From Wallemia ichthyophaga EXF-994 (lineage: Eukaryota; Fungi; Basidiomycota), in contig NW_008806280.1 in NCBI RefSeq assembly GCF_000400465.1, positions 507,634 through 539,633 of the forward strand: a DNA stretch of 32,000 bases. The letters run 5' to 3'. The notes beneath the pieces were generated by a model. The model did not search any database. It saw nothing but the letters and a program-made list of their open reading frames with translations, and was not told the origin of the DNA. This document shows positions 10,475 through 32,000 of the stretch, one piece after another. Every line of letters starts with the position of its first letter. Position 1 is the stretch's first letter. Both the position numbers and the translations under genes were made by a program.

Positions 10475-12379
10475 ATGACGATGATGTCGACGATGACGAG
10501 GTTTCAGGATCCGCTTGTAGCATTCCCACCAGAGCTTGTGCTGCGCATAATATCAGAATTAGATGTTAGCAGTTTATCAGCGATGCGTGAATGCAGTAAA
10601 TCTTGGAACACATTTGTAGACGTACACGAGGAAGTTCTTTTCACGCTTATTAGAGATAAACAAGGTAGATTGTTTGAGGATGCATTGAATACACTTGAGA
10701 GCGTTGGCGGGGGATACGATAAGTGTAATAATTGGAGAGATCTTTGTGAGTTATATAATTATATTCACGCATTAAAACTAAACCCATATTCAGTCATCAA
10801 TGACAATAAAGTTCAATCTAATATCAAATCTAATCATCCAAAGATTTTTGAGCGTTTCGTAAACACTGGTATGACCCTTACTTGGAGATTTAAGCCGGAT
10901 TTTGATTTGAATTTCGTTGTCATCACTGCACATCAAGGTGGAGTCAAAGTCTTTGATTTAAATACTTCAGAAGCTCTATGGGAAATTCCAGAGGTAAAAA
11001 TTTCTTGTTTCAGATGTCACCTCACTCACTCCTTCATAGGAAGAAGTACGCCCGCACGCACACCTCGAATATTCCAATGGTCACTTCTGTATCGATCGCT
11101 TTGGAAATGCTTTGGAGGTTTGGAGGAGAAATGACATTGAAAATGCTTATAGAGGTGAGCATGATGAGATGCTCCCAGAGAATCGTGGTCATTTCACTCG
11201 CGTTGCCATTCTACCCCATGAAAGAGAGACTAGAGGTTTTCAATTAGACTACCCACACCTCTCCGTTGTTTCTAGTGAAGGTCACGGATATCTCTACGAC
11301 GTATCAGGCACACCTAGTTTAATCCGTCAGGTTGATATCGAACGAGGCGCAATTGGTCACCTCGATCAGTGTCCAGCTGCTATTGTCTTCTCGATTGGCA
11401 CAAATGGCTATCACTTCCACAGCAAAACTGATGGTAGACTGATGGGTACATTTCCACCTCAGGAAAGCAATCTCACTCCTGCTAACTACTTCCACGCCCA
11501 TCACCCTCAACCACCAATGCCAGGTGGTAGCGCTGGTACTGAGAATATACCTGCTCCAAGTCAGCATGTCGAGAATACACGACTCGGAAATGGAACACTC
11601 CAAGAAAATCCACCTTCGAGACCTAGAACGCACGAAATGGCAAGTCTTCAAGGTGACGATTGGGGAGCAGGTATGATAGATGGACCGTACTTTGTCGGAA
11701 TAAGTAGGTCAGGTAGATTAGTACTGTGCTCAGATTGGGAAGCTACACTCGCAACACCCTCATTGGCATCGCAAACGGTCAGCGTACTTGAGTCGGAGAC
11801 TGATGACTCGAGGTTTGATCTCGGAGGCTGGCTAAGTGTGAGGCACGGAAAGGTGCTATTCGAAGTTTCTGATAGGATATATATCCTCCATTTACCACCT
11901 CAAGGAGAGTTGTTAAATCCAGCGACAGCACCACCAATACAAACAGTACCTTCAAACTCATACGCACAACTTCCAGTGCCGATTAGTTACATGTCGGTGC
12001 ACTCTGATGCTGTCATGTCTACATACGCCACACTACTATTCAATGCGGTGAGAATTGGAGTGGCGAAACACATAAGAATTCTTTCATTCGCAGGTGAAGT
12101 GGATGATAGTAGTAAGTGGATAGATCCGCAGTCTCCTGAAAATGAGGATCCTCATAGAAGTGCGTGTACGATTGCATGAATTGTGAAGATTTTAACGAAA
12201 GTTCAGATTTTATACTGGAAGTAATGCAAGATAATGCCAACATGCTGGTACCAGAAGATGAAGATGAAATAGAGAATATAATAGAAGATTTTGATCAAGA
12301 CGAGCAGGATTGGGAGGATGTAAGTGAGGAGAGTGAGGAGGGGGAGAATAGAGGGGAGAGAATTGATCAGGTATTGTAG
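10475..12379 (+). CDS. F-box protein with putative beta-propeller-like C-terminal region, multi-exon
   Basis: F-box DPLVAFPPELVLRIISELDVSSLSAMRECSKSW. Introns near 10746, 10993 and 12160 link the ORFs 10475-11134, 11112-12179 and 12164-12379. The tail is acidic. Confidence 0.75.
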
Positions 12380-12780: not shown

Positions 12781-15700
12781 ATGAGTGAGTTGGCGTGGTT
12801 TATAACACTTGTTACGTCATTAACGGTTAACACAGACTCATCCGCAACTCAACTTTCCTCTCCTCCAGCCTCACCTGCTCATCGATTCATTTCTATCCAC
12901 GAAGCTTCTCATTTCGATCGCAGGCAATCAGCAGCTCAAGCAGCCCCAGGAATTCCAATTACTCCTTCCTCTGAATCTTACCTACCATTTCCACGTTCAG
13001 CTTCACCAGCACCTGCAACTCTAGCCCCTTCTCCATCTCTCTCACACGCCGTCGTTAGCTCCCCGCTAGCTGTACACGCAACTCTCTCTCCACCAGCCAC
13101 ACCTTCACTAGCAAAGAGACCTCTCAACCCAATCACTCATAGCCCACGTTCGTCCATTGCCTCTGTTACTTCCCCAACCCACAGGCAATCTATGGCTCTC
13201 GCTGTCTCTTTGTCCTTGGCTGGTAGCGTCGCCTCTTCTAGATGTTCCTCTAGTTCCGCTCAATCTCGTCTTTCTTCTAGAAGGTCTTCTCTCAGTGACT
13301 ACCCTTCAAAATGGTCAGATGAAGGCGGTGACGAAAGAGACAGCGACGATGATCAAGGCTGCGATATTTTTAAACTCGGTGATGTCTTTGGTGAAGGTTA
13401 CGATTTTCAAGGTCAACCTGTTAGATCTGTTGAATTAGGCACTCAAACTCAACAAAGATTAACTGACAGACCAAAGAAGATGGAAGTTGTTAAAAAATTA
13501 GGTACTGGCTCTTACGCTGCTGTTTACGCGATGAAAGAAATTCTTCAATCCGATCACGATTCAGATGAGGATGATTTCGAATTATCTGGCGTACCTAACA
13601 AAAATGTTAACAAGGGTGGACAACCAAGAATGTTTGCTTTAAAGGCTTTATCAAAGAAGAATCTGGATGATTCTCAACTTGAAATTCAAATGTATGAGGC
13701 GAGGATACATCAATCTCTACCGGTAAACCAAAACATTGTCACGCTTTATCACACACTTGAAACTTCCAATTGGTTATTTTTGTTGATGGAGTACTGTCCA
13801 GGTCAAGATCTTTACTATTGGTTACAAGGTAGATTAGATGAATCTAGTCTGGATTTAGATGAAGAATCTGATCAAGAAGTCAGCATGTCCAATGAAATGA
13901 CTCCTTCTGCCTCCACGTTAGCTGCTACTCCTTTAGCTAGAAACGGTCACTCTCTAATGGATAAATATTTGGGTGGAGTAGGCAACAAAACTCCTTCAAC
14001 TCCCTCTTTGTTGGCAAATGTTGACACAAGAAATACTATGGAAGGTAGAGCCAGACTCAGACTCATCTCAAGAATGTTCGAATCAATGTGTGAAGCTGTG
14101 GCAGTTTGTCATGATAACGGTATAAGTCACAGAGATATCAAGCCAGAGAACTTTATTGTGACTGACGGTGTGGATGTCATTCAACTTGGCGATGGTAGAA
14201 CTAAAAAGGAGAGAAAGGTTATTTGCAAGCTAACTGATTTTGGTCTTTCCACCTTCGATACTCAGTCATCTGACTTTGATTGTGGCAGCAAGTCATATAT
14301 GGCGTTTGAATGTCGCAATAATCTTAACCCAACTTACAATCCAAAACCAGCTGATGTATGGTCACTTGGTATAGTACTCCTCAATATGCTCTTTAAGCGT
14401 AATCCATGGGGCGAACCAAGTGTTGAAGCAGATGAGTCATTCGACTACTATTGCCAGGATCCTCAAATGTTCTTGACTGGTGCATTTGCTTTAACTGAAC
14501 CAGCAGCTGAATTTTTGGCAAAGAATGTCTTATGTGAAGAGACTAAAGATCATCATAGAGTTGGTGCTCGAGAGTTTGGTAGATGGGCAAGAGATTTACA
14601 TAAGCATGTAGAATTGCCAAACCAACCTAGCCCATTATCAAATTCCATCAGACCAGCTGTACTTGGTAATAGTTTTACACCCTTGAATATACCATCAAGA
14701 CCACAATCACCTGTCAAGCTGTCTCGTTCAGATGTACTTAACAACAACTTTTCAGAGATTGCAAACACATCTTCACCTAGACTTAACAAGGTTGCCACAG
14801 GAAATGAAGACTTTGATCCAGATTTGGATGACACTTTACCTTCTCCATTACCAATGCCGGAGAGGAAATTGGAATCTGAAAACGAAATGAATAGAATGGT
14901 TGAAGAAGCTACTCCAAGAGTGACAAAATCGTCACCAAACAAGTCTGCCTTGTTAGAATTTGAAGACAGGGACGACATTACACCGGGACAAAAATCATCA
15001 ATGTCATTCCAGAAGAACAAACCAACTAAAGTACAGAGAGAAAGTTTCGAACACACGACAACACCAACGATGGCAACTGCGTGGAATTCATATGGACAAC
15101 GTAGGGATAGAATTGGAAAAAGGCAACAAGCTGCGAATCAAAGTGGAGGTGGAGGTGGAAATGTTACACCAAATGGTTCAACACCATCAAACCACACAAG
15201 TCCAACAAAATCTACTACCCCAAGTAAACCGGGATTCAGACCTTTGAATACATCAGCACCTGCTCAAGGTGGGATATCGAAGGAAGCACCTAACAAACCC
15301 GTTGGAGTTTACAGACCACCAGCTGCTAGAAAGGAAAAAGATAATAAAGAGATAGGATATGGGGAGAAGAAAGTTTATAACAATGGGAACGTGAATGAGA
15401 ATGCAAATACAAACAAAGATGCTACCACTGCTAATGCTAATGAGTGCGTTAAGTTGCCACTGCCAGTTTGGAGACGGAATACTTCCAAACTGGTAGATAG
15501 TAAAAAGGCCAATAGGTCTAACACTACTTCAGGCAGAGGCAAGCAGAATTACGTAAAATGCAATCGCAAGTACCGTACAAGTCGTCCAGTTTTAAGGTGA
15601 GTATTGGTGGGATAATTGACGAAATAGAAATTAACAAAAAACGCAGACCGGTCCTCACAAGCCAACAACAAAAGGCAACAACAACGGATACCAAGGTGCC

Positions 15701-16891: not shown

Positions 16892-16939
16892 TTTTAATAC
16901 ATAAATTTGTACCAATATACATAGATTGATTTTTGTACT

Positions 16940-18089
16940 CTACAGTCTATTTATAACACTCGCCTTGGCTTTGGGTGAGATCGGGTTCTTGTCTGCAAAG
17001 TACGCCAGCAAGAGCTGCGTGGAGATGAACTTGACGCCTTCTGATTTGCTGTCCAGTCGTCCCAGTGTGTCTCCCTATAAATGTTGTTAGATACACACTC
17101 ACCACACAACACAACACACACCTTGTACGACAACACCAAGTCGCCACTCCTTGTCTTTGTCAAAGTCAGTTCATCGCCTTTTGGTACCTTGCTTGGAGGG
17201 AAAAATGACTTGAAAGTCTGCAGCGACTCGTTGACTTGCTTTGAGGGGGGTATTAGTGTGAATGCCGATGTGGGTGTGGAAACTCACCTGCGACTCCTCA
17301 GCGCCCAGCTGTGATGTCTTCATACGCGCCTGAACAGCGCGGACGAATCCATCTCTGAGGTGGCCAAAGTCTGTGTTGCGCACGGGCACTGCGTCAGCAA
17401 GTTAGCAAGTTAGTGCATGTCTTGTCTAATCCTCCACGCACCGATCCTGACTGCAAATGTGTATGGGCTGGTGATCAGCCTCTCCATAAGTTTCTCGCCA
17501 ACCATGTCGCTATCCTGCGAGGCTGTCCTGGTGAGTTTCTCCTTGACGTTCTGGGAGTGGTTTAAGTCAGGTCGGGATGCGCAGTCCGTGGACAGCTTCG
17601 CCACCCACCTCCACGGCAGACAATGCTGAGTGTGCGCTCTCCTCGGCGTATATACCCAGCGAATACACGCGTATACTGAGGAAAGAGACGGTACGCACAC
17701 CCAAGCCAAGCAGCTTGAGCGCTCCGCTGTCGTGTACACTCGCAACCTCATTAGGGAACTTCACCCCGGTATCGCTGTCTTTGCTCAAGTGTGATTCGAG
17801 GTCTTGTAATACGCCGGCCAGGATGGGCTTTGTCGGGGTGTTGGGGGTGTCTAATCTGATGGTATCTGCATCTGCATCTGGGGCGTTGTGAGGTGCGCCA
17901 AGTATCTTCTCAAGACCCACTGTGGCTGTAGTAGGCGAGCACGAGGAGCATCGATGTGGCTCCAGCCACTGCAAGCCTGCCTGTCCTGTGTGCAGTCAAG
18001 CCCTGGCTCTTTGCGATGCTCTTCGATATGTTTCTCACGTTCGCTTGTCGCTGTGCCTGTACACCTCGATGCGCTAATTGGCGGAACAT
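16940..18089 (-). CDS. AIM18: Chalcone-isomerase-fold mitochondrial protein (Aim18/Aim46 family), multi-exon
   Basis: Basic presequence-like start MFRQLAHRG... plus a hydrophobic segment; family motifs LLGLGVRTVSFLSIRVYSLGIY and PVRNTDFGHLRDGFVR; last exon ...LLLAYFADKNPISPKAKASVINRL* with the stop at 16940-16942. Aim18 versus Aim46 cannot be resolved. Confidence 0.8.
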
Positions 18090-18184
18090 GAGTTGGTGGT
18101 GTTGTTAGGAGACGAGTTGCAAAGGTTTGGATTATATGCACCAAGCACCAAGCACAAATCACACAATACAAACAATTTTATTAG

Positions 18185-19709
18185 CTAATGCATCCGTCGG
18201 AACACAACAATATCACCACGTCGTCTGCTATCCTCATGCAAAACCGTGTTGAAGAGGGATAAAGTGACCTCGTATTGCTTCAGCAACTCAGCGTGCAAAT
18301 CACTATAATCGATGAGCAGAGCCTCAAAGACTATGACGACATCCTCAAGATGTCTCTTTCTCATAAACTCTACCGGCGACGCGTAAAAGACGTCCTCCTC
18401 GTTGTATCCACCGGGCTCGCATTGGACAGCATAGAGGGTGAGGTCGGGTCTGTGTATGTGCGACTGCCACGGCGTAGAATGGCACGGCATGTAGAAGCCT
18501 ACACTGCGCACCCCACTAACTTCCCCTACCCACTCAGATACCTCTACTTGACCGCGCATGTGTGTGGTGAGGAGATAGAGCGCAGGTATCACACCCACAG
18601 CCAACCATTTGACTGTCTTCTTACTCAAATTCATCCGCGATGCTGTCAACGCCATCGCTATTGGTAGGAGTGGCTGGATGAAGCGCCATTCTTTGTGTGC
18701 GATGAGCGTGTAAACACCTGTGACAAATATCAGAGTATTTCGCAGCGCTTTCTCGGTAGGTGTGCGCATATCGACCACCGCTTTGTATGTATAGACGATG
18801 CTCGTGTTGAGGAGAATCGGCCATGCCTGTGTAACGTAGTAGAGCGCGCTACTCGTTCCGTAGAAATGCGACACCGAGTTGATTATGTTGCTCTGTATGA
18901 ATCTCACCGGAGTGATTGTGAATGAGCCGTATACCATAGAGTCGAGGGACACAACGGAAATCAGAGCAAATAGCCTGTGGGTATTTTAGGCTGGTGATAT
19001 AGGTAGTAACACATCACTCACCCTACTCCGACTGCCAACATGAGCGCGCTTAGTCGGTTAACGGTTCTTCTTATCAACAAATCAGCCGCTAGGGGTATCC
19101 ATATGAGTACGTTGGTCGGGCGTATTGCCGCCGCTAAAGATATCACCACCAGCGACTTGGTTAACTGGAATTTGCTGTTCAGTGTCAGAAGTGTTGATCA
19201 TATACACATCACCTGCCCTCTGCTAGACCTGCGAAAGGGCCAATAAAACAAAGCTACACTAGTCAAAGCTGCTTCAGCGGTATTTGATAAAGATCTATGT
19301 CGGGTATAGAGGTCATAGACATTGGTGAAGGCTAGCAGAGTCTGGTTGGGTATAAGGAACGTGTCCTATGATGGCAGAGACCCACATAAGACATGGCTTT
19401 CTCATTGCCGTATTCTCTCCTCATAAAGGCGATCAAGGCGATATCCTGTATAGCCGCGAATAAAGCGTTGAGGATCTTTGGAGTGACTTGGACTGGGATA
19501 TTCGCCCAATCACCTAAGGTATATCCAACAGCGTAGATGGCTGGGTAGGCTACAGAACGGATTCGATTTTCCCACTCCCAAGTCAAATAGCCAAATCCAT
19601 AGCGCATCCAGTGTGCGACTTCTAGAGACTGGAAATATTCATCTGGTTGGAAGTAGGTACGTGTAGACAGAGATAGAATTAGTCTCAGTAAGAGGATTAC
19701 TATCAACAT
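18185..19709 (-). CDS. GPI10: GPI mannosyltransferase 3 (PIG-B, GT22 family), multi-exon
   Basis: TYFQPDEYFQSLEVAH, LTWEW, RSVAYP, SNTAEAALT, RPTN, HKEWRFIQPLLP and MPCHSTPWQSHIH motifs. Confidence 0.93.
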
Positions 19710-19744
19710 GGAAGCAAGAAGACAAGGAGGCGATAATAAATAAA

Positions 19745-20749
19745 TTACATGAGCTTGTTAAAAATCTTCTTGAGTAGGGTGAACTGAGGGATGAACATTG
19801 CGACGTGATTCCGGTACTCGTTGTAGGAGGGATACTTTGACAAAGAGATACTCTCTGTGAGTCTGGTAGATGCCTCGAACAGAAGTGACATAGACAGTGG
19901 TGATATGAAGACGCTCAATAGATCTACACCGTCCAATTTGGTTCCTAGAACAACCAGCAACGACCAAATCCACCAATTAAGCTGCTCGAATGCAAAGTTT
20001 GGGTGCCTGGAGATAGCAAATAAGCCCGAACTGTTGAATCCATCTGCGTAGAGTTTCTTCTCTTTTGGAGTGAGTAAATCCTTTTCACTTGCTATCTTTG
20101 TAGAAGAAGCTCTCTTCCAAGATTGATAAGCGTATTGTTGATTATCGGCGATGAACTCGGCTGTGATATTGGCAACACCCAATCCAAAGATGAGATAATC
20201 GTTGCGATTCACGTCATATTGCGGGGTCTTGGCGATGATAAGTGCAGGGATACCTGTGATCAAGTGGAGAATATTCTGTGCAATCGCCACGAAGAAGAGG
20301 TTCAGAAGCTTGAATTGCCACCAGTTCAACTTCCCCCTCACAATGGGCCATCGATAGTCCTCCGAAGCAAAAGCCATGAGACCTCTTCTGGCGGTGTTGA
20401 ATGTTAGCCTCGCGGACCAAATAAGTTGTAATGTGAGCAGCAATAGGGCTCTTTGATTTACGGTTGAATAGAGAATTGAAGTCAGTGGAATTGAAGGGGG
20501 TGCTTGAAGGTAAGTTTTAAAAGCGAGATCGAATGCAGGAATCACGGTGTATAATAGCGGGAGAATTGTCCATACGCGATCAACCTGTGAGACGTTTGAG
20601 GTGATCTCACTAATGCTATATGTCCAGATAGTGTTATATACGCATGCGAGTACCATGAGCTGATCTGTGGATGCATTCAAGTAAATCTCTTTAAGGTTAG
20701 CTGAGTGAGTTATTAGCCGAGTGTAGCTATAAACATCGAGATTGAACAT
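19745..20749 (-). CDS. DUF1295 membrane protein (steroid 5-alpha-reductase-like superfamily)
   Basis: 334-aa intronless ORF with NVSQVDRVWTILP, EDYRW, IADNQQ, GLFAISRHPNFAFEQ and TESISLSKYPSYNEY motifs. Confidence 0.88.
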   Translation of the reverse strand: MFNLDVYSYTRLITHSANLKEIYLNASTDQLMVLACVYNTIWTYSISEITSNVSQVDRVWTILPLLYTVIPAFDLAFKTYLQAPPSIPLTSILYSTVNQRALLLLTLQLIWSARLTFNTARRGLMAFASEDYRWPIVRGKLNWWQFKLLNLFFVAIAQNILHLITGIPALIIAKTPQYDVNRNDYLIFGLGVANITAEFIADNQQYAYQSWKRASSTKIASEKDLLTPKEKKLYADGFNSSGLFAISRHPNFAFEQLNWWIWSLLVVLGTKLDGVDLLSVFISPLSMSLLFEASTRLTESISLSKYPSYNEYRNHVAMFIPQFTLLKKIFNKLM

Positions 20750-21048
20750 GGTGGCGTGTAAGCTAAGAAACGCGGTGTGGATTCATACCACTGCTTATGA
20801 ATATACAAAGAATACGTAGAAATCACTTCTATTGCCCTTTTCTTCCTCCATAAATCTCACCTCGCGTCTTTAACGGGACAAGTGGCTTAACTTGGCGAAA
20901 CCGACCGACGGTAAATACCCGCTTGAAAGAATCCTTTAACGGCAACCACCATCATCAAAACAACAAATGTCATTTATTACAATTCTAATTTTTTCGTGAT
21001 TTCTGACTCGTACGCTTTTCGAAGCACGCCAACCAACTGGGATTGAGA

Positions 21049-22969
21049 ATGCACAGGAGATTTTTACAGCAGAAGCGCTTACAGAGCTCGTCTACTAAGA
21101 ATCTCATTCCAATCAGGACATCTCTAAAGGGCGCTGGTTTGCTTCAGCAGCCCGTCCTCAATAAAGGCTCTGCGTTTAGTAGAGAAGAGAGAGAGATTTT
21201 CCAGGTAGACGGACACATCCCATACGATGTACACAGCCTGGAGAAGCAAATGGTTAGAGCCTATGCTCAGTTTAAGAGACAGCCAAGCAACATCCTTAAG
21301 GTATTTTCATCCCTTCAGCCATGTCTTGTCTCTAAAACCTACACAGCACGCCTTCTTAGCCTCACTCAGAGACCAAAATCAAATTCTGTTTTATGCCTTG
21401 GTTAGCAGCAGGCTCAAGGAAATGCTACCGGTATTGTGAGCATTCTCATTGGCTGTTATTTTTAGCTCACTCGGCTTACTCCCCAGATACACTCCAACTG
21501 TCGGTGAAGCTGTCAGTCAATACTCAGATCTCTTTAGAAGACCTATTGGTTGCTTCCTCAGTTTACCCACTGCTCACACTATGAGAGAGCAACTCCAATC
21601 ACACGCCAATGCCGCTTTTCGTTACAAATATCCACCAGGCATGAAAAATTCAGACACCGAGAGACCTTTCGATATTGTCGTCGTTACCGACAGTGAAGGT
21701 ATTCTTGGTATCGGTGATCAGGGTGTCGGTGGTATCTCGATTTCCACTTCAAAGGCTGCTCTCTACGTAGCAGGTGCTGGCGTTGATCCAAACCGCATTC
21801 TCTCTGTTGTACTCGACGTTGGCACTGACAACCACACTCTCTTCGCCAACCCTCTATACATGGGTTACAAGCACGTCAGAACTAGGGGCGTTGCATACGA
21901 TCATTTTGTCCATCAATTCATGATGAACATCAAGGAGCTCTTCCCAGGTGCTTTGGTTCACTTTGAAGATTTTGGTTTGAACAACGCCGCAAGACTCCTC
22001 GAAACTTACAAGCCCGTATTGCCATGTTTCAATGACGACATTGAAGGTACTGGTGCTGTTGCTCTTGCTGCAACCATGTCTGCTATCGGTGTCACTAAAT
22101 CTAAACTCTGCGATCAAAGAATTGTCGTTTACGGTGCAGGTACCGCTGGTATGGGTATCGCAAACCAAATTAGAGATGCCATGATAGAAGTCGATGGCCT
22201 CACGTTAGAGGAAGCCAATAGCAGATTCTGGTGCATCGACAGAGACGGTCTTCTTCTCAAGAGCAATCCTAGATTGCAGGGTAGTCAACATGATTACGCT
22301 CGCGATGACGAAGAGGTTAGAGATTGGACGAGAGAAATCCAAGAGCAACCTAATTTGCGCATCCTCGATGTGGTAAAGGCAGTCAAGCCAACCATGCTTG
22401 TTGGATGCTCTACCAACGCACGCTCATTCAACGAAGATGTTATCAGGACGATGGCTGAGCATGTGGAAAGGCCAATCATCTTCCCAATGTCGAACCCTAC
22501 ATCCCTCGTCGAGGTCGACCCAGCTGATGCCAACGAGTGGACCGACGGTAGAGCTCTAATTGCTACAGGCTCACCATTCCCACCTGCCAAGAACCCAATC
22601 ACTGGAAAAGATTACTTTATTGCTGAAGCAAACAACGCACTCATTTACCCTGGTTTAGGTTTAGGTACTATTGCATCCAGATCATCAAAGATGAGCAAAG
22701 GTATGATCTTGGCTGGTGTTAAAGCTTTAGCTAGTGCGTCACCTGCATTGGAGGATCCAGATGCACCACTCTTGCCTGACTTGGCTGGAGTTAGAAAAGT
22801 TAGCTTGCAGATCGCCGCTGCTGTCGTCAGGCAAGCTATGGAGGAAGGCGTTGCCAATATTAATCTTAAAAAGGATGATGATGCTATCATCGAACATATC
22901 AAATTTGGTATGTGGGATCCAGTTTATAGACCTTTAGAGTTAGAACCGGAGGATTTAACGAGTGATTAA
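21049..22969 (+). CDS. MAE1: NAD(P)-dependent malic enzyme, multi-exon; start codon uncertain
   Basis: LNKGSAFSREER, YTPTVGEA, VVTDSEGILGIGDQG, LDVGTDN, HFEDFG, FNDDIEGTG, GAGTAG, PIIFPMSNP and NNALIYPGLGLG motifs. Introns start at about 21301 and about 21435. Confidence 0.95.
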
Positions 22970-23270
22970 AATTTCTACTTGAATTACACTCCACGGACGT
23001 TTATAGAATTATTGCATAAACTTATATACCAAAAATACTATCTTTTCCTGCTTCTCTAGAGGTTTTCTAATAAATACTTTGCCATATGTGGTTATGCATT
23101 CTTGGAAACTCGGAGTAATGGGCCTCAACGTAGGCACAAAAGAATATTTTTTCCAATTAAGTCGCATTTATGTTTCCATAGTTTACAAAAATCAACAAAT
23201 ACATTTGAGAGTGAGAGCGTGCGAGAGTAAAACTTTCATCCGTTGACAAGAAAAATCCTTCTATACCCCT

Positions 23271-25245
23271 TTAAACACGTTCATTGTGCATCACTGATCC
23301 TTTTTCAGTGGAGTAGATGGAATCCGTTCCAACTCTCTTCATTTGTCTGTCATTGTCAAAGTTGGCCATGGGTCCGACCTCGTCATCCTCGTGATCACCC
23401 GCACCGGCTTCACCAGCAGTCTTGGCATTCTCGATATCCTTACCGAGATTCTCCTTACCAGCGAGAGCGGTGATGAAAATGAGAGCTCCAATGATTCCGA
23501 CGAAAATACCTGCTACCGTACTGTAATCTTCGATAACTTCACCACTGCAATTAATGATTGTTCTTGTTTCTGCAGCTCTGGCTTCTATTTGAGCTGAGGC
23601 ACTTGATACCATGTTACCGAGCTGATACGTCAATCCGGAGAACAGAGAACGGTATGCTGGTGGCGATGCTTCCTGCAAGAAGATTGGGATGACTGAAGAT
23701 AATTAATCAAATTAGCAAATGATAGCAAAAGAATTTGCAAACTCACCACCCCAAGCGCCCTGTACACCGAATTGAACAAAGAACACACCGGCTGCCAAAG
23801 AATTGAAGTCCATTGGAATGACCCAGAGTGGAATAAATGCACACGCAATTACGGCAAATAGTGCCATCGTGAATCTTCTACCAGCTTTTTGCGACACTGC
23901 ACCGGCAATCGTACCACCAACGACTGCACCGACGTTACCAATGATAGTGAGGAGTGTTGCATCATGTGAGGTTTTACATTTTGCAGTTTCCTGTATTTCT
24001 GGTAAGAGGTGGGTGTTATACATCAGTTGAACACTCACGAAGATCTTTGTGAGAAGGTCTTGTGAGGCGTGGGAGAAAAAGTTGAATAATGTCATCACCC
24101 AGAAACAGTAAAGAGCCATAATCCAGTAGTTCTTAATCATTTTCCAGATTTCCCTCAAGTATGTCTTAGAAGACACTTGCTGATAATCGCCTGATTCGAT
24201 CTGCTCCTTCTTACGTGCCTTGGCTGCCTTGTACGTGTCACTTTCTGGGACAAACATTCTAATTATACCTGCTGCCCATGACAGACCAGCACCTGTGAGG
24301 TGTGAGTGAGGTGTTGATAATTTAAGACACAACCCACCCAAGTAAAACAAACCACGGTATCCAATGTTATCAGGCAATCCCGGCACAAATCCCAGGTTTA
24401 CAACAGCAGCAACTAGGTATCCGACTGCATAACCCTGTTGGAAGATACCTGGTTGGCTTTGTTAGAAATATATTGTTAGTTGCTACCGACGCACCCGAGA
24501 AAAGACCTCTTGCCTCAGAGGGAAGAGACTCAAGTGCAATACTACTTGCAGGTCCGAAAATGGCACCCATTCCTACTTAATGTGAGATGGTTTGGAGGGA
24601 GTGGAGGTTGTCTAAACACACCAATTCCGTAAAGAGACCTGACCTAATGCACTGTCAGCCTAAGTGTAAACATAAATGTTCAAACTCACTGCCAAGAATT
24701 GCGAGAACGTTTTTGCGTACGCAGTTGCCAGAGATAAAGCACCGATGATCGCCATCGTCACGACCAAGACATTGCGTCTACCGAACTTGTCACTAATCAG
24801 ACCACTAATAAGTGCTCCAGCTGAACGCAAAAGAAGCGTGAGAGTCATTGAGGTGGTGATACTCGTTGTGTCTCGCTCGTAATATTCACTAAGCGGGGTG
24901 ACAGACAATGAAACACTGTAACACTAATGTGAGCCGGACATTACGCAAATCGATAATCCAGCCTACCTGAAATAATCATATGCGTCCATGAACCAACCTG
25001 CGTGCTTATGTCAGAAAATTGTCTAAGAAAATTTTAGTGCGACGAAATCGGAGGCTGATTTAGGTGTACTATCAATCAATTACAGCCTTACAGACTTCTT
25101 TCGCACCTTTGTGACACTTACAGAGCCATGCACTCAAGTATTGCATCCAGCCAAGAAAAGTGCTGAGAGTCTTGGTAAGAATGACGAGACTTGACGAATG
25201 GAATTGACTCACATATGTTTGCAGACCTTGAAGCTGAACCGTCAT
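23271..25245 (-). CDS. JEN1: JEN1-like carboxylate:H+ symporter (MFS), many short exons; 5' exon structure uncertain
   Basis: GWFMDAYDYF, TLTLLLRSAGALISGLISDKFGRR, ALESLPSEARGLFSG, QQGYAVGYL, NFFSHASQDL, VQFGVQGAWG and YQLGNMVSSASAQIE motifs. Confidence 0.9.
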
Positions 25246-25813
25246 GTAAGAGGGGATAAAAACTAAATGTAATTTACCCACGGATTCAAGCTGTACTGTC
25301 TATATACGATATTAGCTGGGATATCGCGGAGATAGCAAGGACACTCACTGTTCAGGGTTTTTCGATACTTTAAAGTGCTCGATAACTGCTTGTTTGATCT
25401 TAGCCATTGTTGCTTTTGTTGTTGCTCGTCGCTGCTAAGTAGATTGGTAGGTTGGTTGAGGCTTCGCCGTAAGATGGATTTGATTGAAAGTGTGGGACAA
25501 AAACAAAGAAGCTCTCGTCGTTGTATTTAAATAGAACGGAGAACGGACCACGGACATTTATAGTCTGACAATCAGCTGGGCTGTTTTAACCATTTGACCA
25601 CGAGTGAGTTCCTGACAACATTAATAAGAGGACATGGGTGGAGTTGACGTGTTCATTGCGCTATTATTTGGTCCGCTGGTTACCTTCCTGTTTGAGGGGT
25701 TGGAGTAGGGTCCCGCACTAATGCATTCCTCTACTAAATGGCAAAGGCTCCGACCTCTTTACAGTAAGTGCAGCATCATTGAACAGTCTCAATAACGAAA
25801 AAGTGTAAAAATA

Positions 25814-26551
25814 ATGATACCAGCTCGTCGCCAACAAGCCCAACCTGGCCAATGGCAGTCAAACTGGCCAAGCCCGCAGAATAATCCGAGCAGCCAAGAT
25901 GTTACGGAGAAATCGGCAAGCTCAGCAGGTGAGTTGTCATAGTCAGCAGGTCACCCTCGATCACTGACATTGTGATCAGTTACGACAGGCGAATCACAAC
26001 CTGAGCCAGAATCTTCACAAGAATCCTCACAAGAACAGGATCGTGACACGCTGAGTGATAAGGGCAAGTCAGCACTTGCGCCGACGCTGACGATATTCAT
26101 CGTGATCGCGCTTGTCGCAGTGGCACTTCTGTACTGGACACGCAGGAGAAAGAGATTCGTGAAAGACGAGCAGAAGAAGCTCGAGGTGGAGACAGTCAGC
26201 TCAACAGACAAGGATTACAAGGGTGACATGTTTGATAGGATAGAGAGTCCACCGCCAATATATACCAGAAGTAGCAGTTTATCCGTACCGACGAGAAAGG
26301 ACTTTATTAACGGAAATCGCGACAACGACGAGAACCGTGAATTTTCTGACTACTCACTCACGGCGCCGACAGTGAGATTTGGTGGCTCTCAAATACCATC
26401 TAGAAGTTCATCTGTGACGAGTATGCCCGCATCAAATAGCCGTGCCAATTCATACGCGGGCACAGGCAGCAATCGATCAAGTGTGGCTAATCCAAATATG
26501 GTACTCCCACCAAAGACGTATACGCCATTTGAAGAAACAATGAGAAATTAA
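25814..26551 (+). CDS. Single-pass membrane protein with cytoplasmic PPxY motif (paralog A)
   Basis: ATG at 25814 and intron 25929-25979 give an in-frame join to ORF 26102-26551. The TM segment SALAPTLTIFIVIALVAVALLYW is followed by RRRKR, then ESPPPIY. Confidence 0.7.
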
Positions 26552-26893
26552 TGCATGTACTAAATTTATTATGAATCAACATTCGTTTATGTGAACAAAA
26601 CCACCAAGTGCGATTAGGTGTTTACCGGTATTATTTGTATAAATCAGGCTTGTTACACGGAATTTTATTATTTATCACACTGGTCTACCTTGCTCGATTA
26701 GATTGGATAGATATGACTTCTCGCAGCGTGTACATAAAAGAAGAGCGACAACTCAATTCTAGAAAATGTGGCAAATCTGGCATTCATTCACTTTAATTGA
26801 GATTTCCTCAGCTTAGCTTAGGCACGTATTCATACCAAAGTCCAAAGGCTAAACACTAGCCTCTCACTCTACTTTCCCTATCATCGCAAATCG

Positions 26894-27976
26894 ATGCGGT
26901 TGAAATTAAGCAGAAAGTTGTCAAACAGGCAAGCAACTCTCCCAGATGGTTTTGAAGGCTCGGGTTTGAAGATGGGTTCAAGTAACACCGGCAATAGTGA
27001 AACACAAAAGCAAGCAGGTCAATCTGAAGATGAAGCAGACGATGTCTTCAATATCCCTGAAAGTGAGTCTTACCTTGTACATCCAAAACAAACTAACAAT
27101 ATCCAAGACCCTCCTGACTCTGACCAGCCAAAAATCGACCAGCACCAACATGGCAACGAGAATCACAACGAATATTCCTCAGCTCTCGCACCCTCACTCA
27201 CCATTGGTATCGTCGCAATCATCATCATTTCTGCCGTCGTCGTTCGCTACATGAGAAGGAAGAAGAAGCTGGAAATGCTCGGCAACGCTCCAAACAAACA
27301 GAGCGAAAAGGAGAAGCAGCTGGTGGACAATGAGCCGTATGCCAACTCTTCATTAAACTACGGTGACTACGACACTACGCCTCCACCCACATACACAATC
27401 CTGCCTCGGAGTACGTCCCTTAACACTCACGGCACCTTCGGCAACGACCAATTTGGCACTATAAACAGTGTCAACAGTGGTATCAACCAATTTGGCGCTA
27501 TGAACAGCGTCAACAGCGGCAACAACCAATTTGGCACCATAAACAGCGCCAACACCGTCAACACCATGCAAGATCTCCCTCCGACACCAGCCCCTGAAGA
27601 CGAGGGGGACTTGCGTGGACTTGAACCACCAAGGAGACCTTACGTACAATCGCCGCCAACTGTTCATTTTGCACCAATCATGCCGCGCTCCTCCTCCCTT
27701 GGGAGCGTTAATTTGCCGCAATCAGCTTCCCAAGGTAGTGTCAGGAGTGTAAATGAACGTACTGCCAGTCCAACTGAGCGCGCTGCAAGTCCATTATCAC
27801 ATTCATCAAGTCATGCTTCTTTTCGACCACAGTCTGTCACACCGGTGCCCAGAAAAACCCCTTCCCCATCCCAACTAGTTTCGCCTCCGGCAAGTCAATC
27901 GCAGCCATCATCTCCCGCCTCAGTCACCTTCGTCAAGTCTCCACCTCCATACGCTCCATCTCCCCCACCTGGCTAA
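26894..27976 (+). CDS. Single-pass membrane protein with PPxY motifs and Asn-rich repeat (paralog B)
   Basis: 360-aa ORF. The TM segment SALAPSLTIGIVAIIIISAVVV is followed by RYMRRKKK; it carries PPPTY and PPPY motifs and a Ser/Pro-rich tail. The start is uncertain. Confidence 0.75.
   Translation: MRLKLSRKLSNRQATLPDGFEGSGLKMGSSNTGNSETQKQAGQSEDEADDVFNIPESESYLVHPKQTNNIQDPPDSDQPKIDQHQHGNENHNEYSSALAPSLTIGIVAIIIISAVVVRYMRRKKKLEMLGNAPNKQSEKEKQLVDNEPYANSSLNYGDYDTTPPPTYTILPRSTSLNTHGTFGNDQFGTINSVNSGINQFGAMNSVNSGNNQFGTINSANTVNTMQDLPPTPAPEDEGDLRGLEPPRRPYVQSPPTVHFAPIMPRSSSLGSVNLPQSASQGSVRSVNERTASPTERAASPLSHSSSHASFRPQSVTPVPRKTPSPSQLVSPPASQSQPSSPASVTFVKSPPPYAPSPPPG
27446..27562 (+). repeat. Three 39-bp tandem units encoding (D/N)QFG(T/A)(I/M)NS(V/A)N(S/T)xx
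   Basis: ACCAATTTGGC recurs at 39-bp spacing; the translation is DQFGTINSVNSGI NQFGAMNSVNSGN NQFGTINSANTVN. Confidence 0.9.
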
Positions 27977-28087
27977 CTGAAGAAAGACAATGTATTTATA
28001 TCGAATGTACTCATGAATTAATGGTTTAATGGCTTATATTACTTAATGAAAAGAGAGTTGGCTAATTACTAAGCGAGCGTGATAGAA

Positions 28088-28975
28088 TCAGGGAATCAAA
28101 GAGTACGAGCGCTCAAAGTTTGGTGGGTCTTCATCGGCAAAGCATCCAAAGGGCGTGTCGTTATAGTCCGTCTCAGGTGGCTTGATTGAGCGTGGTTTAG
28201 GTGGCCAAAGCTTTGGGCGAAGCTGAGATGGATCCACCTGGCAAGAGTTTACCATCTGAACATTTGCTGGCTGTGAATGCATATCATCTATGGAAAAGTC
28301 GTTAAGCATCGCGCTGATAGTTTTGTCGATGCCGGACAATCCATCTGGAACGGCAGATTCTGTGCAACGGTTTGTCTTATCTTCAAGGTGTGTGTTATTT
28401 CCTACACACTCCTGATCGTTCTCCACCTGCTTTTGCTTTTGCCCCTGCTCCTTCTGCTTTTGCTTTTTTGGTTTTGCGCGACGCGTGAGCTTGACGCCAG
28501 GGTATTGGAGCTTGTGGTTTTCAGTCTCGATATTCGCCAAATAGTTATAACGGTCGCGCTGCGCTTTCGTGAGCTTGGAGTACTCTGCCGAGGCCAAACT
28601 CGAAACTTGGCCGACGGCCTTCACTTCACATCCTTCAGCTCTGCAGTTACATTAGCTAATATTTCCATCGATTTTTGCGCTCACTTACTTCAGCTTGTCC
28701 TGAAATTCGTTCCGAAATATTAGCCAAGCGCTGTGCTGGTTAAAGTGGACGTAATGAGAGTGGAGGTTGCTTACTCACTTCAACGGTTTGGTGATACTAT
28801 TTCTTTTCCTGCGTCTCTTTTTCGGTGGCTTGTCCTGTGTGGGTGCGACGGGTTCATCGGGAGCACCATGAGCACCGTGGGTACCAGCGTCGATAGCGTC
28901 TCCAAGTACATCGAAAGTCAACGCGTAATCACCCAAAGTATCAAACTCAGGCCAAGCTTGCAAGTACTCGGACAT
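28088..28975 (-). CDS. Divergent HMG-box (MATA/SOX type) transcription factor, 3 exons
   Basis: Two 48-bp introns (28731-28778 and 28641-28688) give ITKPLNAWLIFRNEFQDKLKAEGCEVKAVGQVSSLASAEYSKLTKAQRDRYNYLANIETENHKLQYPGVKLTRR, which aligns with the RPxNAFILFR...ISK...W..L...K..Y...A..EK..H...YP.YK consensus. A basic NLS (KKRRRKR) precedes it. Confidence 0.85.
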
Positions 28976-29328
28976 TGCTAATCATGTGACGCAGTAAAGG
29001 ATGCCCGTAAGGCACAGTAAGAGATTTTAAATACACATGAGCTATTCCACAGTGCATTTTCGCTTATTAAGCATTACAAACGCTAAAGGTGTAAGTGACC
29101 CTTTCCGCTGATCAACTGTGTGAGGAGTGTGTGAGATGCGAGTGGCTTACATTCTGCATGTCTTAGTATCTAGGTCTGCCGTGTGTGAAATCTCTTCACC
29201 TCCATGCTACCCCAACCATAACGTAAGCCAACAAATTGCTGAAATTTAAATCAAACGACCCGATCCAGAGCATTATACGCCAAAAAATAATGTGGAGCAA
29301 AGGTACAACAACATCGTCCAATAATTTT

Positions 29329-29370
29329 AAAAAATTATAAACTCAAGTATATTATGTACTTAGGGCAAAA
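29329..29370 (-). terminator. Candidate Pol III oligo-dT terminators downstream of the permuted tRNA
   Basis: T4 at 29370-29367 (6 nt after G37) and T6 at 29334-29329 on the minus strand. Confidence 0.5.
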
Positions 29371-29376
29371 TTATAA

Positions 29377-29452
29377 CCGTAGTCGAATACTCTACCATTG
29401 AGCCAGCCGGCCGTGGTGACCGACGCAGGGCTCGAACCTGCAACCTTTCGAT
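29377..29452 (-). tRNA. Circularly permuted tRNA-Arg(ACG): 3' half (29452-29417), CCAC spacer, 5' half (29412-29377)
   Basis: Minus strand reads A TCGAA AGGTT GCAGG TTCGAGC CCTGC GTCGGTC A | CCAC | GGCCGGC TG GCTC AATGGTA GAGT A TTCGA CT ACG G. Re-ordered, it gives a 72-nt cloverleaf in which all four stems pair. Confidence 0.88.
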
Positions 29453-29463
29453 ATCAGTTACTC

Positions 29464-29474
29464 CCATTGAGCTA
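29464..29474 (-). promoter_or_regulatory. Pol III A-box-like element (TAGCTCAATGG) upstream of the tRNA 3' half
   Basis: Matches TRGYNNANNNG and is nearly identical to the D-arm A-box of the 5' half (TGGCTCAATGG). It starts 36 nt before the B-box GGTTCGAGCC. Confidence 0.65.
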
Positions 29475-29614
29475 GTTTGAATATGTAAACGTCTTGATCT
29501 TTGTGAGGTGAAACTGCACACAAAGAGCAAGGCGCTGAGATTAATAAAAGAATTAAGTCTAAGATGTATTAAAAGAAAAAGTAGTCGTTTAAATAGTTTA
29601 GAATTCTAGGTTTT

Positions 29615-29697
29615 ATTCCCATTGTCTCGTTATCTTCATTGTCCTCGTGCATAATCATGCATAATCTTCATTGTTCTTTATTCTCATTGTTCTCATA
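29615..29697. repeat. Degenerate short tandem repeat built on CATTGT / (T)TATCTT units
   Basis: CATTGT occurs four times at irregular spacing, with recurring ATAATC/ATCTT motifs between. Confidence 0.5.
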
Positions 29698-29712: not shown

Positions 29713-29739
29713 TTAGGTTTATAGGTTAGGTTAGGTTAG
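29713..29739 (+). repeat. Telomere-like (TTAGG)n tract, imperfect
   Basis: Read directly: TTAGG TTTA TAGG TTAGG TTAGG TTAG. Confidence 0.75.
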
Positions 29740-32000
29740 CAAGCATTTAATTATTGTCGATACAATTTGTCTTATTTCTAAAATACTTTAAAAAGATGAA
29801 AAATTTGTGGTAATCCAAATGATCGCTTAGAACTCAAAATACGCTGCCCTTGCGCGTATAAGGCCCAATGATAACAGTCTTGTAAGCATTTCATAATGCG
29901 GCGTTATCTTTCGCCACTTCTGAAACACTTCATTCGAAGAATCCGTTACGAAACCCCCCGCAGTGAGAAGAAGCGGAACAAAGGAAGTATCAGTGAGGTC
30001 CCCGTACTTGTTGACCTTTTCACGCTCATAAAACGACAGCTCCATCTTGTACCGACCCAATGGGCCAAGATTCTTGAGGTGGGTCGCTGCCGTCTTCACA
30101 CTGGCTGTAGGGGCGATTATCGTAAGGTCGTACTCACACGAGTTCCCTTTAGACGCTGCTGGGCCAGTTACCCGAAAGTCCGTTCTTAAATGAGTATTTC
30201 TTACAGCTGGCTCAGGAGTAATTGTTGAAGCGGGAGCTGCTGCAAGAAATCTCATAAGAAGGCCTTTCACATAATCATGCCGAGCCGTCCTAAGGTTTTC
30301 GCGTGAGTTACAGATATCATCATGGCCTACAGAATTCTCCATGCCACATTTCCTGCAATTGTTATCCTTACCAGGACAAAGAGTACGAATGTGTAACGCA
30401 TACGAAATCTCAGTGTCCGAAAGCTTCAGTTGCTTGTTGTATGGTATTGTTGATAACCATTTCCGGCCCAGCTTTGATTGGCTATCCAGCACGACGTTCC
30501 TCTGATCCCGGCTAAGTGTATCAAACTTCTTGTTGAATTCCAACTCATAAAAAGCTCCAGTACGTTGACGCTGCAGCGTTAAAGTCTCATACGGACCACT
30601 ACGTTGATGAAAAATGGCCTCTAACGTAACGCAAGCTTGTTCCATCATCGAAGCATACGCCATGGGAGCCACGTCTGAATGTAACGGTACACCCAAACCT
30701 CCATAGCGCTGAGGAATGCCGATGATCCAAGTGTCCAAGACTTGACGACGTGATGACCCACGTAACTTCTTCACTTTTTCATGAAGAAGCGTATCCAACA
30801 CATTCCATTCCTCCAACATGTCATCAGTCCTGAGGCTGCGCTGCAAATGACGTAGCTCTGCTTGAATGCATCTAAGTAAAAGCAAGAGCTGATGTTGGGA
30901 ATGAACACCGTCTAGTGCTTCGACCTTGGAACGAACTTGAGCAGTCTTGGAACGGAGGAAGCCTGCACGTGCTTCACGCGGCCCGACCATGGATCCCAGG
31001 ATCTCGCGCCCATGTTGCCTCACATCGTCCCATGATACCACCGAACACTTGGAGCGGTTAAGCTGTAGACCACAAGTTACCTTGGCGAAGAACTCCTCGA
31101 CGTCTGCCATGACATCCTCGGTTGCAAAAAGGTACACGTCGTCGAGATACGCAAGCACCATTGCCCTATCACCAAGTATCTTTTGTAAGTCTTGGAGTGT
31201 ATCCTTCACCGCTAACGAAAACAGTAGCGGGCCAAGCGGATCACCTTGCCGAACGCCTTGACTGGATTGAAGGGACGCCTGCGTATCATCGCCGTTGACT
31301 AGGAGTGAGCTAGGTTGATTATAAGCCCACTTGACTGCTTTGGTGATTGGCTGTAAATGCTTGAAGGTTGCGGATGCTAATACTTTCCTATCGATAGTGT
31401 TGAAAGCATTACGAAAGTCCAACGATATCATGTATTTGTACTGTCCTTCATCCTTATCGACTTGCAGTTGCGACGCAAGCACGATGGGCTCTACGCCTCC
31501 ACTTGTACCTACACCAAGCTGATATGGATGGAGACAGGACGGCTTGAAATATGTACGCATAACAACCTTCATAACTAGACGATAAAAGATCTCACCGACA
31601 GCTATTGGACGGACACCACCATCCGATTTTGCAAGAGGGATGAGTCGGCTGGCACAGAGCATCTGTTGAGCGGGGGCTGTACCTTGTACGACTAGACGCA
31701 CTAGCAGATCCATAAAGTGCTTGAATGAATCCACCTTGTACGCCTCCTTGGTTAGACTGTAAGTCCAGCCAGAAGGTCCTGCCGCTGTCGATGTGTTCAT
31801 CCTTTTCATCGCTTCCAAGCTATCCCCATCAGCTGGCATAAGACCCGAACGATACCCGTTGATACCCTTGAAAGGGTTAGGTTCACCTTGAGGGTGTTTG
31901 CTACTTAGCTGATCTATAACCTCACCCGTCACTGGAAGTATGCCGGCTTTGTCTCCCAAGACTCGACTCGCGGTACCGAGGCTTAGGTGAACAAGCATTT
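29740..32000 (-). mobile_element. Non-LTR retrotransposon, CRE clade (Cnl1/MoTeR/SLACS-like): RT + CCHC zinc knuckle + restriction-like endonuclease; 5' part lies beyond the window
   Basis: ORF 29827-31998 is uninterrupted for 723 aa. RT motifs: RPIAVGEIFYRL, QLGVGTSGGVEP, SLDFRNAFNTIDR, QGVRQGDPLGPLLF, AYLDD. Zinc knuckle: CRKCGMENSVGHDDIC. REL motifs: RHD, EP, RTD, YDLT, EKVNKY, FVPLLL. The 3' boundary is inferred from the TTAGG tract. Confidence 0.92.

Follow-up and report, generated by a model that had tools for sequence, protein, structure and literature searches.

The window analysed here, a stretch of 32,000 nucleotides from the basidiomycete Wallemia ichthyophaga EXF-994, carries a tRNA-Arg(ACG) gene whose 3′ half precedes its 5′ half on the minus strand. 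The best reading is that this is a functional, nuclear, circularly permuted tRNA gene of type II, broken between positions 37 and 38 and conserved in the genus Wallemia, and we regard it as very likely (about 0.85). The gene order, its conservation, the covariation, the complementarity of leader and trailer, the T-runs and the match to a native intron are established directly. Expression of the gene, circularization of its transcript and processing of the ends are inferred.

Anatomy of the Permuted Gene

The 3′ half of tRNA-Arg(ACG), positions 38-73, comes first (29452-29417, minus strand; ATCGAAAGGTTGCAGGTTCGAGCCCTGCGTCGGTCA). Starting with A38, this half supplies the 3′ strands of both the anticodon and acceptor stems, with the variable loop and the T arm between them, and it ends with the discriminator A73; it contains the B box GGTTCGAGCCC (29438-29428, minus strand). 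A linker, CCAC, lies between A73 and G1 (29416-29413, minus strand), and is followed by the 5′ half, positions 1-37 (29412-29377, minus strand; GGCCGGCTGGCTCAATGGTAGAGTATTCGACTACGG), with the 5′ strands of the acceptor and anticodon stems, the D arm and the loop residues C32, U33, A34, C35, G36 and G37. Downstream of the 5′ half, the minus strand reads TTATAATTTT. When the halves are re-joined, they form a cloverleaf with all 7 of 7 acceptor pairs (two of them G-U), a D stem of 4 bp, and anticodon and T stems of 5 bp each. The loop CU-ACG-GA, G18G19 and the A15:U48 pair are all present, and the conserved elements of eukaryotic tRNAs that were checked in the re-joined halves (U8, R15:Y48, G18G19, U33 and TTCGA in the T loop) are met.

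The locus had been singled out in an original prediction, made by reading the letters without database searches. That prediction gave the order 38-73, CCAC, 1-37 on the minus strand, placed the break at 37/38, the canonical intron position, and listed the pairings and conserved residues of the re-joined tRNA. On re-reading the sequence, the order and the break position held, and every listed pairing and residue is present. It had also expected a tRNA scan of the re-ordered sequence to return Arg(ACG), and ARAGORN indeed reports tRNA-Arg(acg) for the re-joined 72-mer. In the native order, ARAGORN calls nothing, whether introns are allowed or not, and Rfam gives no match at gathering thresholds, so that the claim that standard tRNA scans miss this locus holds for these two tools. 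With up to 3 mismatches allowed, each half has a single match in the window, and 100 shuffles produced none. Thus no second 3′ half was found downstream in the window at this threshold, as had been claimed.

In the precursor, the linker is inferred to form a loop that closes the acceptor stem. The Wallemia gene does not qualify as a split (trans-spliced) tRNA gene of the kind known from Nanoarchaeum and Caldivirga, whose halves occupy separate loci with their own promoters and complementary flanks. In Wallemia, the halves are 1-4 nt apart on the same strand without a promoter or terminator between them.

The gene is flanked by a leader (-29 to -1; 29453..29481, minus strand; TTCAAACTAGCTCAATGGGAGTAACTGAT) and a trailer (29365..29376, minus strand; TTATAATTTTGC). 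A block of 93% identity with a paralogue described below begins at 29481, and the homology stops at 29365. The first candidate terminator for RNA polymerase III is a T4 run (29370-29367, minus strand). A T6 run located 43-48 nt past G37 (29329..29334, minus strand) may serve as a back-up or alternative terminator, a role that is inferred. A possible extra leader-trailer pairing, AGCUCA with UGAGUU, precedes the T6 run.

Permuted Copies in Wallemia

Another W. ichthyophaga strain is represented by a contig (L003, GCA_004918415.1) that matches the window at 100% identity from position 16894 to 29689, where it ends, and the permuted gene is thus not an artefact of one assembly. Altogether, four independent permuted loci were found: the window locus (shared with L003), a second locus in W. 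ichthyophaga, and one each in W. mellicola and W. hederae. At the second locus, three W. ichthyophaga strains carry a permuted copy (L016-L018). The W. mellicola copy was found both on a metagenome contig (L007), which was placed in this species from the genes that it carries, and in the CBS 633.66 reference genome (L019). On the metagenome contig, the permuted order is that of the window and the flanks are unrelated. The linker reads CCAC in the window and in W. hederae (L015); W. mellicola has just an A, and the second W. ichthyophaga copy has CTAC or CTGC. Since the linker varies in this way across loci, an encoded CCA is not required. The original prediction had proposed looking at related species, and the permuted order is kept in both W. 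mellicola and W. hederae.

One syntenic site, marked by genes for a hydrophobin, a YHM2 carrier, a Rab GTPase and a tricalbin, harbors three of the permuted copies: the second one of W. ichthyophaga and those of W. mellicola and W. hederae. The W. hederae copy adjoins the hydrophobin gene, with the other three close by. In the W. mellicola reference genome, a weak gag-like ORF was noticed about 1.2 kb from the permuted gene. The window copy is a paralogue, because W. ichthyophaga has another copy at the syntenic position, and the window therefore holds one of at least two permuted copies in this species. The two copies have only 117 nt in common (29481-29365, 93% identity), a stretch that extends 29 nt into the leader and 12 nt into the trailer. 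The 3′ half is identical in L003, two of the three second-locus strains (L017 and L018) and both W. mellicola sequences (L007 and L019). The second copy of EXF-994 has an extra T in the T loop, which may be a sequencing error or may mark the copy as damaged.

The exact 36-nt 3′ half was compared with 241 million JGI metagenome records. It matched only once, to the permuted W. mellicola contig, and no canonical copy of the exact 3′ half was found in that scan. When windows were duplicated in tandem and submitted to ARAGORN, the permuted gene was recovered at every locus. A sliding-window version of this procedure over about 150 kb of Wallemia sequence revealed no permuted tRNA other than Arg(ACG). 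The same scan also gave two spurious calls with low support. At tricalbin orthologue loci of a Wallemia-like organism (L009-L014), no permuted gene lies within 10 kb, and the upstream region is not syntenic there. Four other contigs (L008 and L020-L022) stop short of the syntenic site. No Wallemia tRNA inventory was found in the supplements of the genome paper or by text search of the literature.

Conservation and Covariation Between the Halves

Both W. ichthyophaga copies and the W. mellicola copy show 0/72 differences in the mature sequence, while the flanks outside it are essentially unalignable across species. W. hederae has five mature changes. One is in the D loop, and the other four make up two compensatory pairs: in the acceptor stem, C3-G70 is replaced by A3-U70, and in the anticodon stem, U28-A42 is replaced by C28-G42. 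Both compensated pairs (3:70 and 28:42) bridge the 3′ half and the 5′ half; the two substitutions in the W. hederae 3′ half are each matched by a change in the 5′ half. In all five distinct sequences, every one of the 21 cloverleaf pairs is standard; with slid partners, the share falls to 25-44%. In a simulation with 5 random substitutions, retention of all pairs together with at least 2 double changes had a probability of 1e-4. All of this covariation comes from a single divergent lineage, W. hederae. Residues 32-38 of the anticodon loop and all tRNA identity and tertiary positions are invariant. The window copy shows none of the marks of a retro-pseudogene that were looked for, namely an A-tail, flanking direct repeats and decay of the mature part. 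From this conservation and covariation between the halves, it is very likely that selection acts on the permuted unit.

The original prediction had inferred function from the retention of every pairing. Intact pairing in one sequence is insufficient for this, because a retro-pseudogene could not be excluded with a reverse-transcriptase ORF nearby, and that ORF, about 375 nt upstream, was absent from the prediction. The inference is now supported by comparative data beyond the single sequence. An assembly artefact, which the prediction had named as an outcome that would refute it, can be set aside since independent assemblies carry an equivalent arrangement.

Leader, Trailer and Junction

Under an enforced cloverleaf, leader and trailer pair with each other within every species, although the pairing sequences of different species are not homologous. 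In the window copy, the leader segment GTAACTG (29461-29455, minus strand) forms a 7-bp helix, GUAACUG with C35-G36-G37-UUAU, that takes in both C35-G37 and UUAU of the trailer. W. mellicola pairs CCGU with ACGG and adds an outer helix of 13 bp, and W. hederae has a long, imperfect leader-trailer helix of about 20 bp. Compared with 5000 dinucleotide shuffles of the leader, duplex strength is significant in W. mellicola (p=0.0008) and W. hederae (p=0.025) and marginal in the window copy (p=0.054), and the combined p for these three copies by Fisher's method is 1.2e-4. The pairing is weak in the second W. ichthyophaga copy (p=0.30).

G at position -3 is invariant across the four loci. Positions -5 and -4 are only C or U, so that pairing with G37 and G36 is always kept. 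The trailer is followed by T-runs at every locus: T4 and then T6 in the window, T4 plus T5 in the second copy, T7 in W. mellicola and T6 in W. hederae. The first terminator candidate in W. ichthyophaga is only a T4. TTTTGC occurs in the trailer of both W. ichthyophaga copies and W. mellicola, and no T4 is present inside the gene at any locus. It was also considered whether the trailer is a decayed 3′ half (AAAGGTTGC against AAAGTTTTGC). This is plausible by eye and was rejected, with p>0.2 at every locus.

A canonical, strict 3-4-3 BHB at the junction was rejected as well, as pairing of positions 32-35 with -3..-6 gives only C32:G-3 in every species. The conserved junction pairing is instead that of 35-37 with -3..-5, and in the window copy the 5′ cleavage site falls within the 7-bp helix. 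A native intron provides a local standard: the W. ichthyophaga pre-tRNA-Arg(UCU), with a 36-nt intron, adjoins the syntenic copy. Its fold comprises the anticodon stem, a 3x3 internal loop in which 32-34 face -2, -1 and 38, and a helix that starts at 35:-3 and runs across the 5′ splice site. The geometry of the permuted junction is the same, with cleavage inferred, and because native Arg(UCU) folds alike, the permuted junction resembles a local intron with its loop opened. Eukaryotic splicing endonuclease measures from the mature domain, and this domain is intact in the permuted gene.

Promoter Clues and Ancestry of the Leader

The W. ichthyophaga leader contains TAGCTCAATGG (29474-29464, minus strand), a D-arm sequence that is near-consensus for an A box, 36 nt before the B box. 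It is a copy of the D arm of the gene itself. Similarity between the leader and its own 5′ half is supported in the window copy (p=0.002) and the second copy (p=0.018), borderline in W. mellicola (p=0.06) and not significant in W. hederae. It is likely that the leader carries the decayed D arm of a former upstream 5′ half, and because of this decayed arm, ancestry from a tRNA dimer is also likely. A linker consisting of CCA and one further base, seen at 2 of the 4 loci, possibly hints that the dimer was reverse-transcribed from mature tRNA. This is no more than speculation, because the W. mellicola linker is A alone.

Further upstream, a hexamer CACAAA (-53 to -48; 29500..29505, minus strand) is a candidate promoter element whose function is inferred. 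It is invariant in the window copy, W. mellicola and W. hederae, with a similar box in the second W. ichthyophaga copy, and it lies within an upstream block whose similarity among the loci goes beyond the hexamer. A TATA box was rejected as a common element, since TATACAC at -59 of W. mellicola and W. hederae is missing in both W. ichthyophaga copies. The promoter is likely made up of the B box and the A-box-like relic of the leader, and/or the upstream CACAAA/TATA-like block, an inference from sequence alone. Since a T-stretch follows the 5′ half and the linker is free of terminators, the gene is likely a single transcription unit, although its promoter and its transcription are inferred.

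Proposed Maturation

In the proposed pathway, RNA polymerase III would make one RNA consisting of the leader, the 3′ half, the linker, the 5′ half and the trailer, and would stop at the T-run. The halves would fold into a cloverleaf with the acceptor stem closed by the linker of 1-4 nt, and the leader and trailer would pair together and with C35-G37. The tRNA splicing endonuclease (Sen complex) is predicted to cut after G37 and before A38, and tRNA ligase would join 37 to 38 to produce a circular RNA of 73-76 nt. RNase P would then cut 5′ of G1, and a 3′ nuclease would trim the linker, followed by CCA repair or addition. An equivalent pathway has been demonstrated experimentally for algal permuted tRNAs (PMC3978253). 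In Wallemia, maturation via a circular intermediate, as the original prediction proposed, remains an inference.

Alternative Explanations

The window also contains ordinary fungal genes, among them MAD1, an HMG-box gene and genes for malic enzyme and a protein kinase, and its proteins match W. ichthyophaga. An ORF of 723 codons with an RVT_1 domain (31998-29827, minus strand) starts within 2 nt of the window edge and ends about 375 nt upstream of the tRNA gene on the same strand. Its best solved relatives are R2 retrotransposon proteins. A match to a reverse transcriptase of Pyricularia oryzae would be compatible with a telomere-targeted element of the MoTeR type. A telomere-like tract, (TTAGG)3.6, lies about 90 nt past the ORF stop codon (29722-29739), and the R2-like element ends about 270 nt from the tRNA gene. 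Relatives of the element in metagenomes (L004-L006) are head-to-tail units joined by AACCTAAC or (CCTAA)n, not by tRNA sequence.

Because an R2-like element and a (TTAGG)n tract are just upstream, debris of reverse transcription was the first suspicion. In this scenario, an R2-like reverse transcriptase copied a nicked or CCA-tailed tRNA, jumping template from G1 to the CCA end at a chromosome end that was being healed, and left a retro-pseudogene. The reverse-transcriptase ORF on the same strand, the telomere-like tract and the CCTAA-type repeats joining the relatives are in favor of it. A linker of CCA and an extra C is what would be expected from cDNA of a mature tRNA followed by a template jump. 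Furthermore, m1G at G37 is a likely stop for reverse transcriptases, and the break follows G37. However, the permuted gene stands at the syntenic site in three species, where no retroelement was found beside it at any of the three loci. The mature part is conserved or compensated while the flanks diverge, the linker is not CCA in 3 of 5 sequences, leader-trailer pairing and terminators are maintained, and the element stops about 270 nt off rather than at the tRNA. More specific variants, site-specific insertion of the element into a tRNA gene or cDNA stopped at m1G37, were rejected given the CCTAA-type ends of the relatives and the element-free orthologues. A retro-pseudogene is therefore very unlikely, and reverse transcription survives only as a possible ancient origin of the gene.

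A second alternative is that the locus is a decaying relic of a tandem dimer, not expressed as tRNA, which gene conversion from canonical Arg(ACG) genes keeps alike. The decayed D arm in the leader fits such a relic, and canonical Arg(ACG) copies are not excluded, as whole Wallemia genomes have not been scanned. Gene conversion occurs among tRNA gene copies and could in principle copy compensatory changes into a relic. However, conversion cannot yield leader-trailer complementarity that is specific to each species. It also leaves unexplained why G at -3 is invariant, why a T-run directly follows the trailer helix at each locus and why conservation between the paralogues stops sharply at -29..+12. 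Decay is seen in the outer halves but not in the inner ones, which have 0/72 changes between W. ichthyophaga and W. mellicola, and the metagenome scan with the exact 3′ half gave no canonical copy. We consider this explanation very unlikely as well.

Third, the locus may produce a stable, permuted tRNA-like noncoding RNA akin to bacterial YrlA, which is bound by a Ro60-like or other tRNA-binding protein and never takes part in decoding. The Rfam YrlA model (RF02553) matches 29370-29461 with E=4e-6 and 34.9 bits, and the leader-trailer stem and anticodon stem share the YrlA topology. This score is far under the gathering threshold of 69, and the search at gathering level is empty. The putative Ro-binding stem is not conserved in sequence between species, whereas the anticodon loop and the tRNA identity and tertiary positions are invariant and the molecule is otherwise an ordinary eukaryotic tRNA-Arg. 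Besides, the split coincides precisely with the canonical splice position, and its geometry is that of a native intron. This role is very unlikely, too.

Finally, an assembly or chimeric-read artefact might be suspected since the locus adjoins a repeat where short-read contigs break (L003 ends at 29689), but identical or equivalent arrangements in the window, L003, L016-L018, L007, L019 and L015 all but exclude it.

Comparison with Known Permuted tRNA Genes

The closest counterparts of the permuted Wallemia gene are type II genes of prasinophyte algae (Ostreococcus and Micromonas) and of the Bigelowiella natans nucleomorph (Maruyama et al., 2010; PMC3978253). They have the same order on one strand, 3′ half, short linker and 5′ half, with the same 37/38 junction, leader-trailer pairing, a downstream T-stretch and no terminator in the linker (PMC3978253). 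In contrast to these, the host of the Wallemia gene is a heterotrophic basidiomycete, and only Arg-ACG was found permuted in about 150 kb. The Wallemia junction does not form a clean BHB but mimics a local eukaryotic intron, sharing its 3x3 loop and its helix over the 5′ site, and the A-box-like relic of its leader could permit ordinary transcription of the TFIIIC type, as inferred.

The red alga C. merolae follows the same concept (Soma, 2007), and the route proposed there starts with a circle made by endonuclease and ligase and continues with RNase P, tRNase Z and CCA addition (PMC3978253). Of its 43 tRNA genes, 11 are permuted, with several junction positions, intervening sequences of 7-74 nt and no encoded CCA. 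Transcription is thought to be TFIIIC-independent and to start from an upstream TATA, and homologues of TFC1 and TFC3 are unidentified (PMC3978253). Wallemia differs from C. merolae in its linkers, which are 1-4 nt long and include CCA in some cases. In this respect, tRNA-iMet and tRNA-Tyr of Thermofilum pendens, with intervening sequences of 1 and 7 nt and an encoded 3′ CCA (Chan, Cozen and Lowe, 2011; PMC3978253), are similar; their short, CCA-bearing linkers resemble the CCAC of the window and the 1-nt linker of W. mellicola. However, T. pendens is an archaeon with an archaeal splicing endonuclease, its junction is at 59/60 in the T loop, and its permuted genes have additional introns at 37/38.

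Canonical intron-containing tRNAs of Wallemia itself, such as Arg(UCU) and Val(AAC), are predicted to have the same splice-site geometry as the permuted gene, and in exon sequence, Arg(UCU) is clearly related to Arg(ACG). They differ from it by the normal exon order and a closed intron loop, and are found by ARAGORN when introns are allowed.

No fungal permuted tRNA gene is reported in the full-text literature searched, in agreement with the original prediction, which knew of no fungal case. A review of August 2026 still confines eukaryotic permuted tRNA genes to certain unicellular algae. Within the literature searched, the Wallemia gene is thus likely the first circularly permuted tRNA gene outside algae and archaea. 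A basidiomycete case would mean that the standard tRNA splicing and end-processing machinery of opisthokonts can support permuted genes, maturation being inferred, and that the arrangement arose independently outside photosynthetic lineages. Because routine annotation overlooks permuted genes, a genome may seem to lack an essential tRNA, and fungal genomes with "missing" isoacceptors merit re-scanning.

A bolder reading can be put forward. In five long ORFs of the window, CGU, CGC and CGA account for 52/166 Arg codons, and therefore tRNA-Arg(ACG) is needed. If Wallemia has no canonical Arg(ACG) gene, these three codons would be read only by way of permuted genes, and their decoding would require a circular-RNA step performed by the ordinary Sen endonuclease, Trl1 ligase and RNase P of fungi. 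With whole genomes unscanned, the balance tips slightly against this reading. As a further step, it is possible that the gene originated from a head-to-tail tRNA dimer, the upstream 5′ half of which decayed into a leader that supplies the A box; if true, the "duplicate and lose the outer halves" model would have its first living intermediate. The linker of CCA and C leaves room, too, for an origin by reverse transcription of a CCA-tailed tRNA. Wallemia is culturable and the enzymes open to yeast genetics are homologous, so that experiments can address how permuted genes originate as well as the pathway through a circular intermediate; the leader retains a relic of the lost 5′ half.

Apart from permuted tRNA genes, the bacterial YrlA RNA (RF02553) has the same linear order of T arm, acceptor-like stem and D arm, closed by a stem of the 5′ and 3′ ends. 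It is Ro-associated and not processed to tRNA, whereas the Wallemia locus has a full ACG anticodon arm. The sub-threshold match to the YrlA model is an independent recognition of the permuted topology in a locus that is not a member of that family.

Copies of the permuted gene in Wallemia

The W. ichthyophaga EXF-994 reference has a second permuted copy (KE007226.1; positions 12133-12209 of locus L016), in which the T loop carries one additional T, GGTTTCGAGCC, and the linker is CTGC. In two other strains of W. ichthyophaga, the T loop of this second copy has the normal 7 nt and the linker is CTAC. The additional T is either an error in sequencing the homopolymer or a sign that the copy is damaged in this strain.

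The next gene downstream of the window's tRNA gene, about 400 nt away on the same strand, is an intron-containing HMG-box gene (window 28088-28975, minus strand). The syntenic copies of the permuted gene have a hydrophobin gene as the neighbor in place of the HMG-box gene. From this difference in neighbors it is inferred that the window copy either arose by duplication of a segment of only about 117 nt or no longer has any homology in its flanks.

Metagenome and Logan contigs of a Wallemia-like organism (L009-L014) contain a tricalbin with 70% identity to that of W. mellicola, and the cluster of this tricalbin has no NCBI member. The gene order upstream of tricalbin is different at these loci, and the permuted tRNA was not found there within 10 kb.

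Detection of Wallemia tRNA genes

Canonical Val(AAC) and Arg(UCU) tRNA genes are located at 15373-15475 and about 20888-20996 in the loci of the second copy (L016-L018), at 4010-4113 in the W. hederae locus, and at 19282-19382 in the W. mellicola locus. They have introns of 28-36 nt at 37/38 and are found only by ARAGORN with the intron option (aragorn -i). Because such genes escape a run without introns, a result of zero tRNAs from that run is uninformative for Wallemia.

The Rfam model of YrlA, a bacterial Y-like RNA whose tRNA-like domain is permuted, matches window 29370-29461 (minus strand) over its full length, below threshold (34.9 bits, E=4e-6). In other genomes, sub-threshold YrlA matches could point to permuted tRNA genes at little cost.

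Retrotransposon and repeats at the window end

An R2-like non-LTR retrotransposon together with a TTAGG tract occupies window 29722-32000 (minus strand). Its ORF (31998-29827, minus strand) encodes RVT_1 and, on the C-terminal side, a CCHC/REL-endonuclease-like region. The telomere-type repeat, (TTAGG)3.6 at 29722-29739 (minus strand), adjoins the 3′ end of the element. Among its metagenome relatives, L004 and L005 are assembled as head-to-tail units of 3351 bp, and L006 has (CCTAA)n at its end. The contact of the element with TTAGG and the arrangements in its relatives suggest a family of telomere-targeted elements in Wallemia and a subtelomeric position for this end of the window. That TTAGG is the telomere repeat of Wallemia is no more than hinted at. 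The stretch that separates the telomere-like tract from the conserved block upstream of the tRNA gene contains short tandem repeats, both imperfect: TGCATAATCA x1.9 and TCATTGTTC x3.4 (window 29648-29696).
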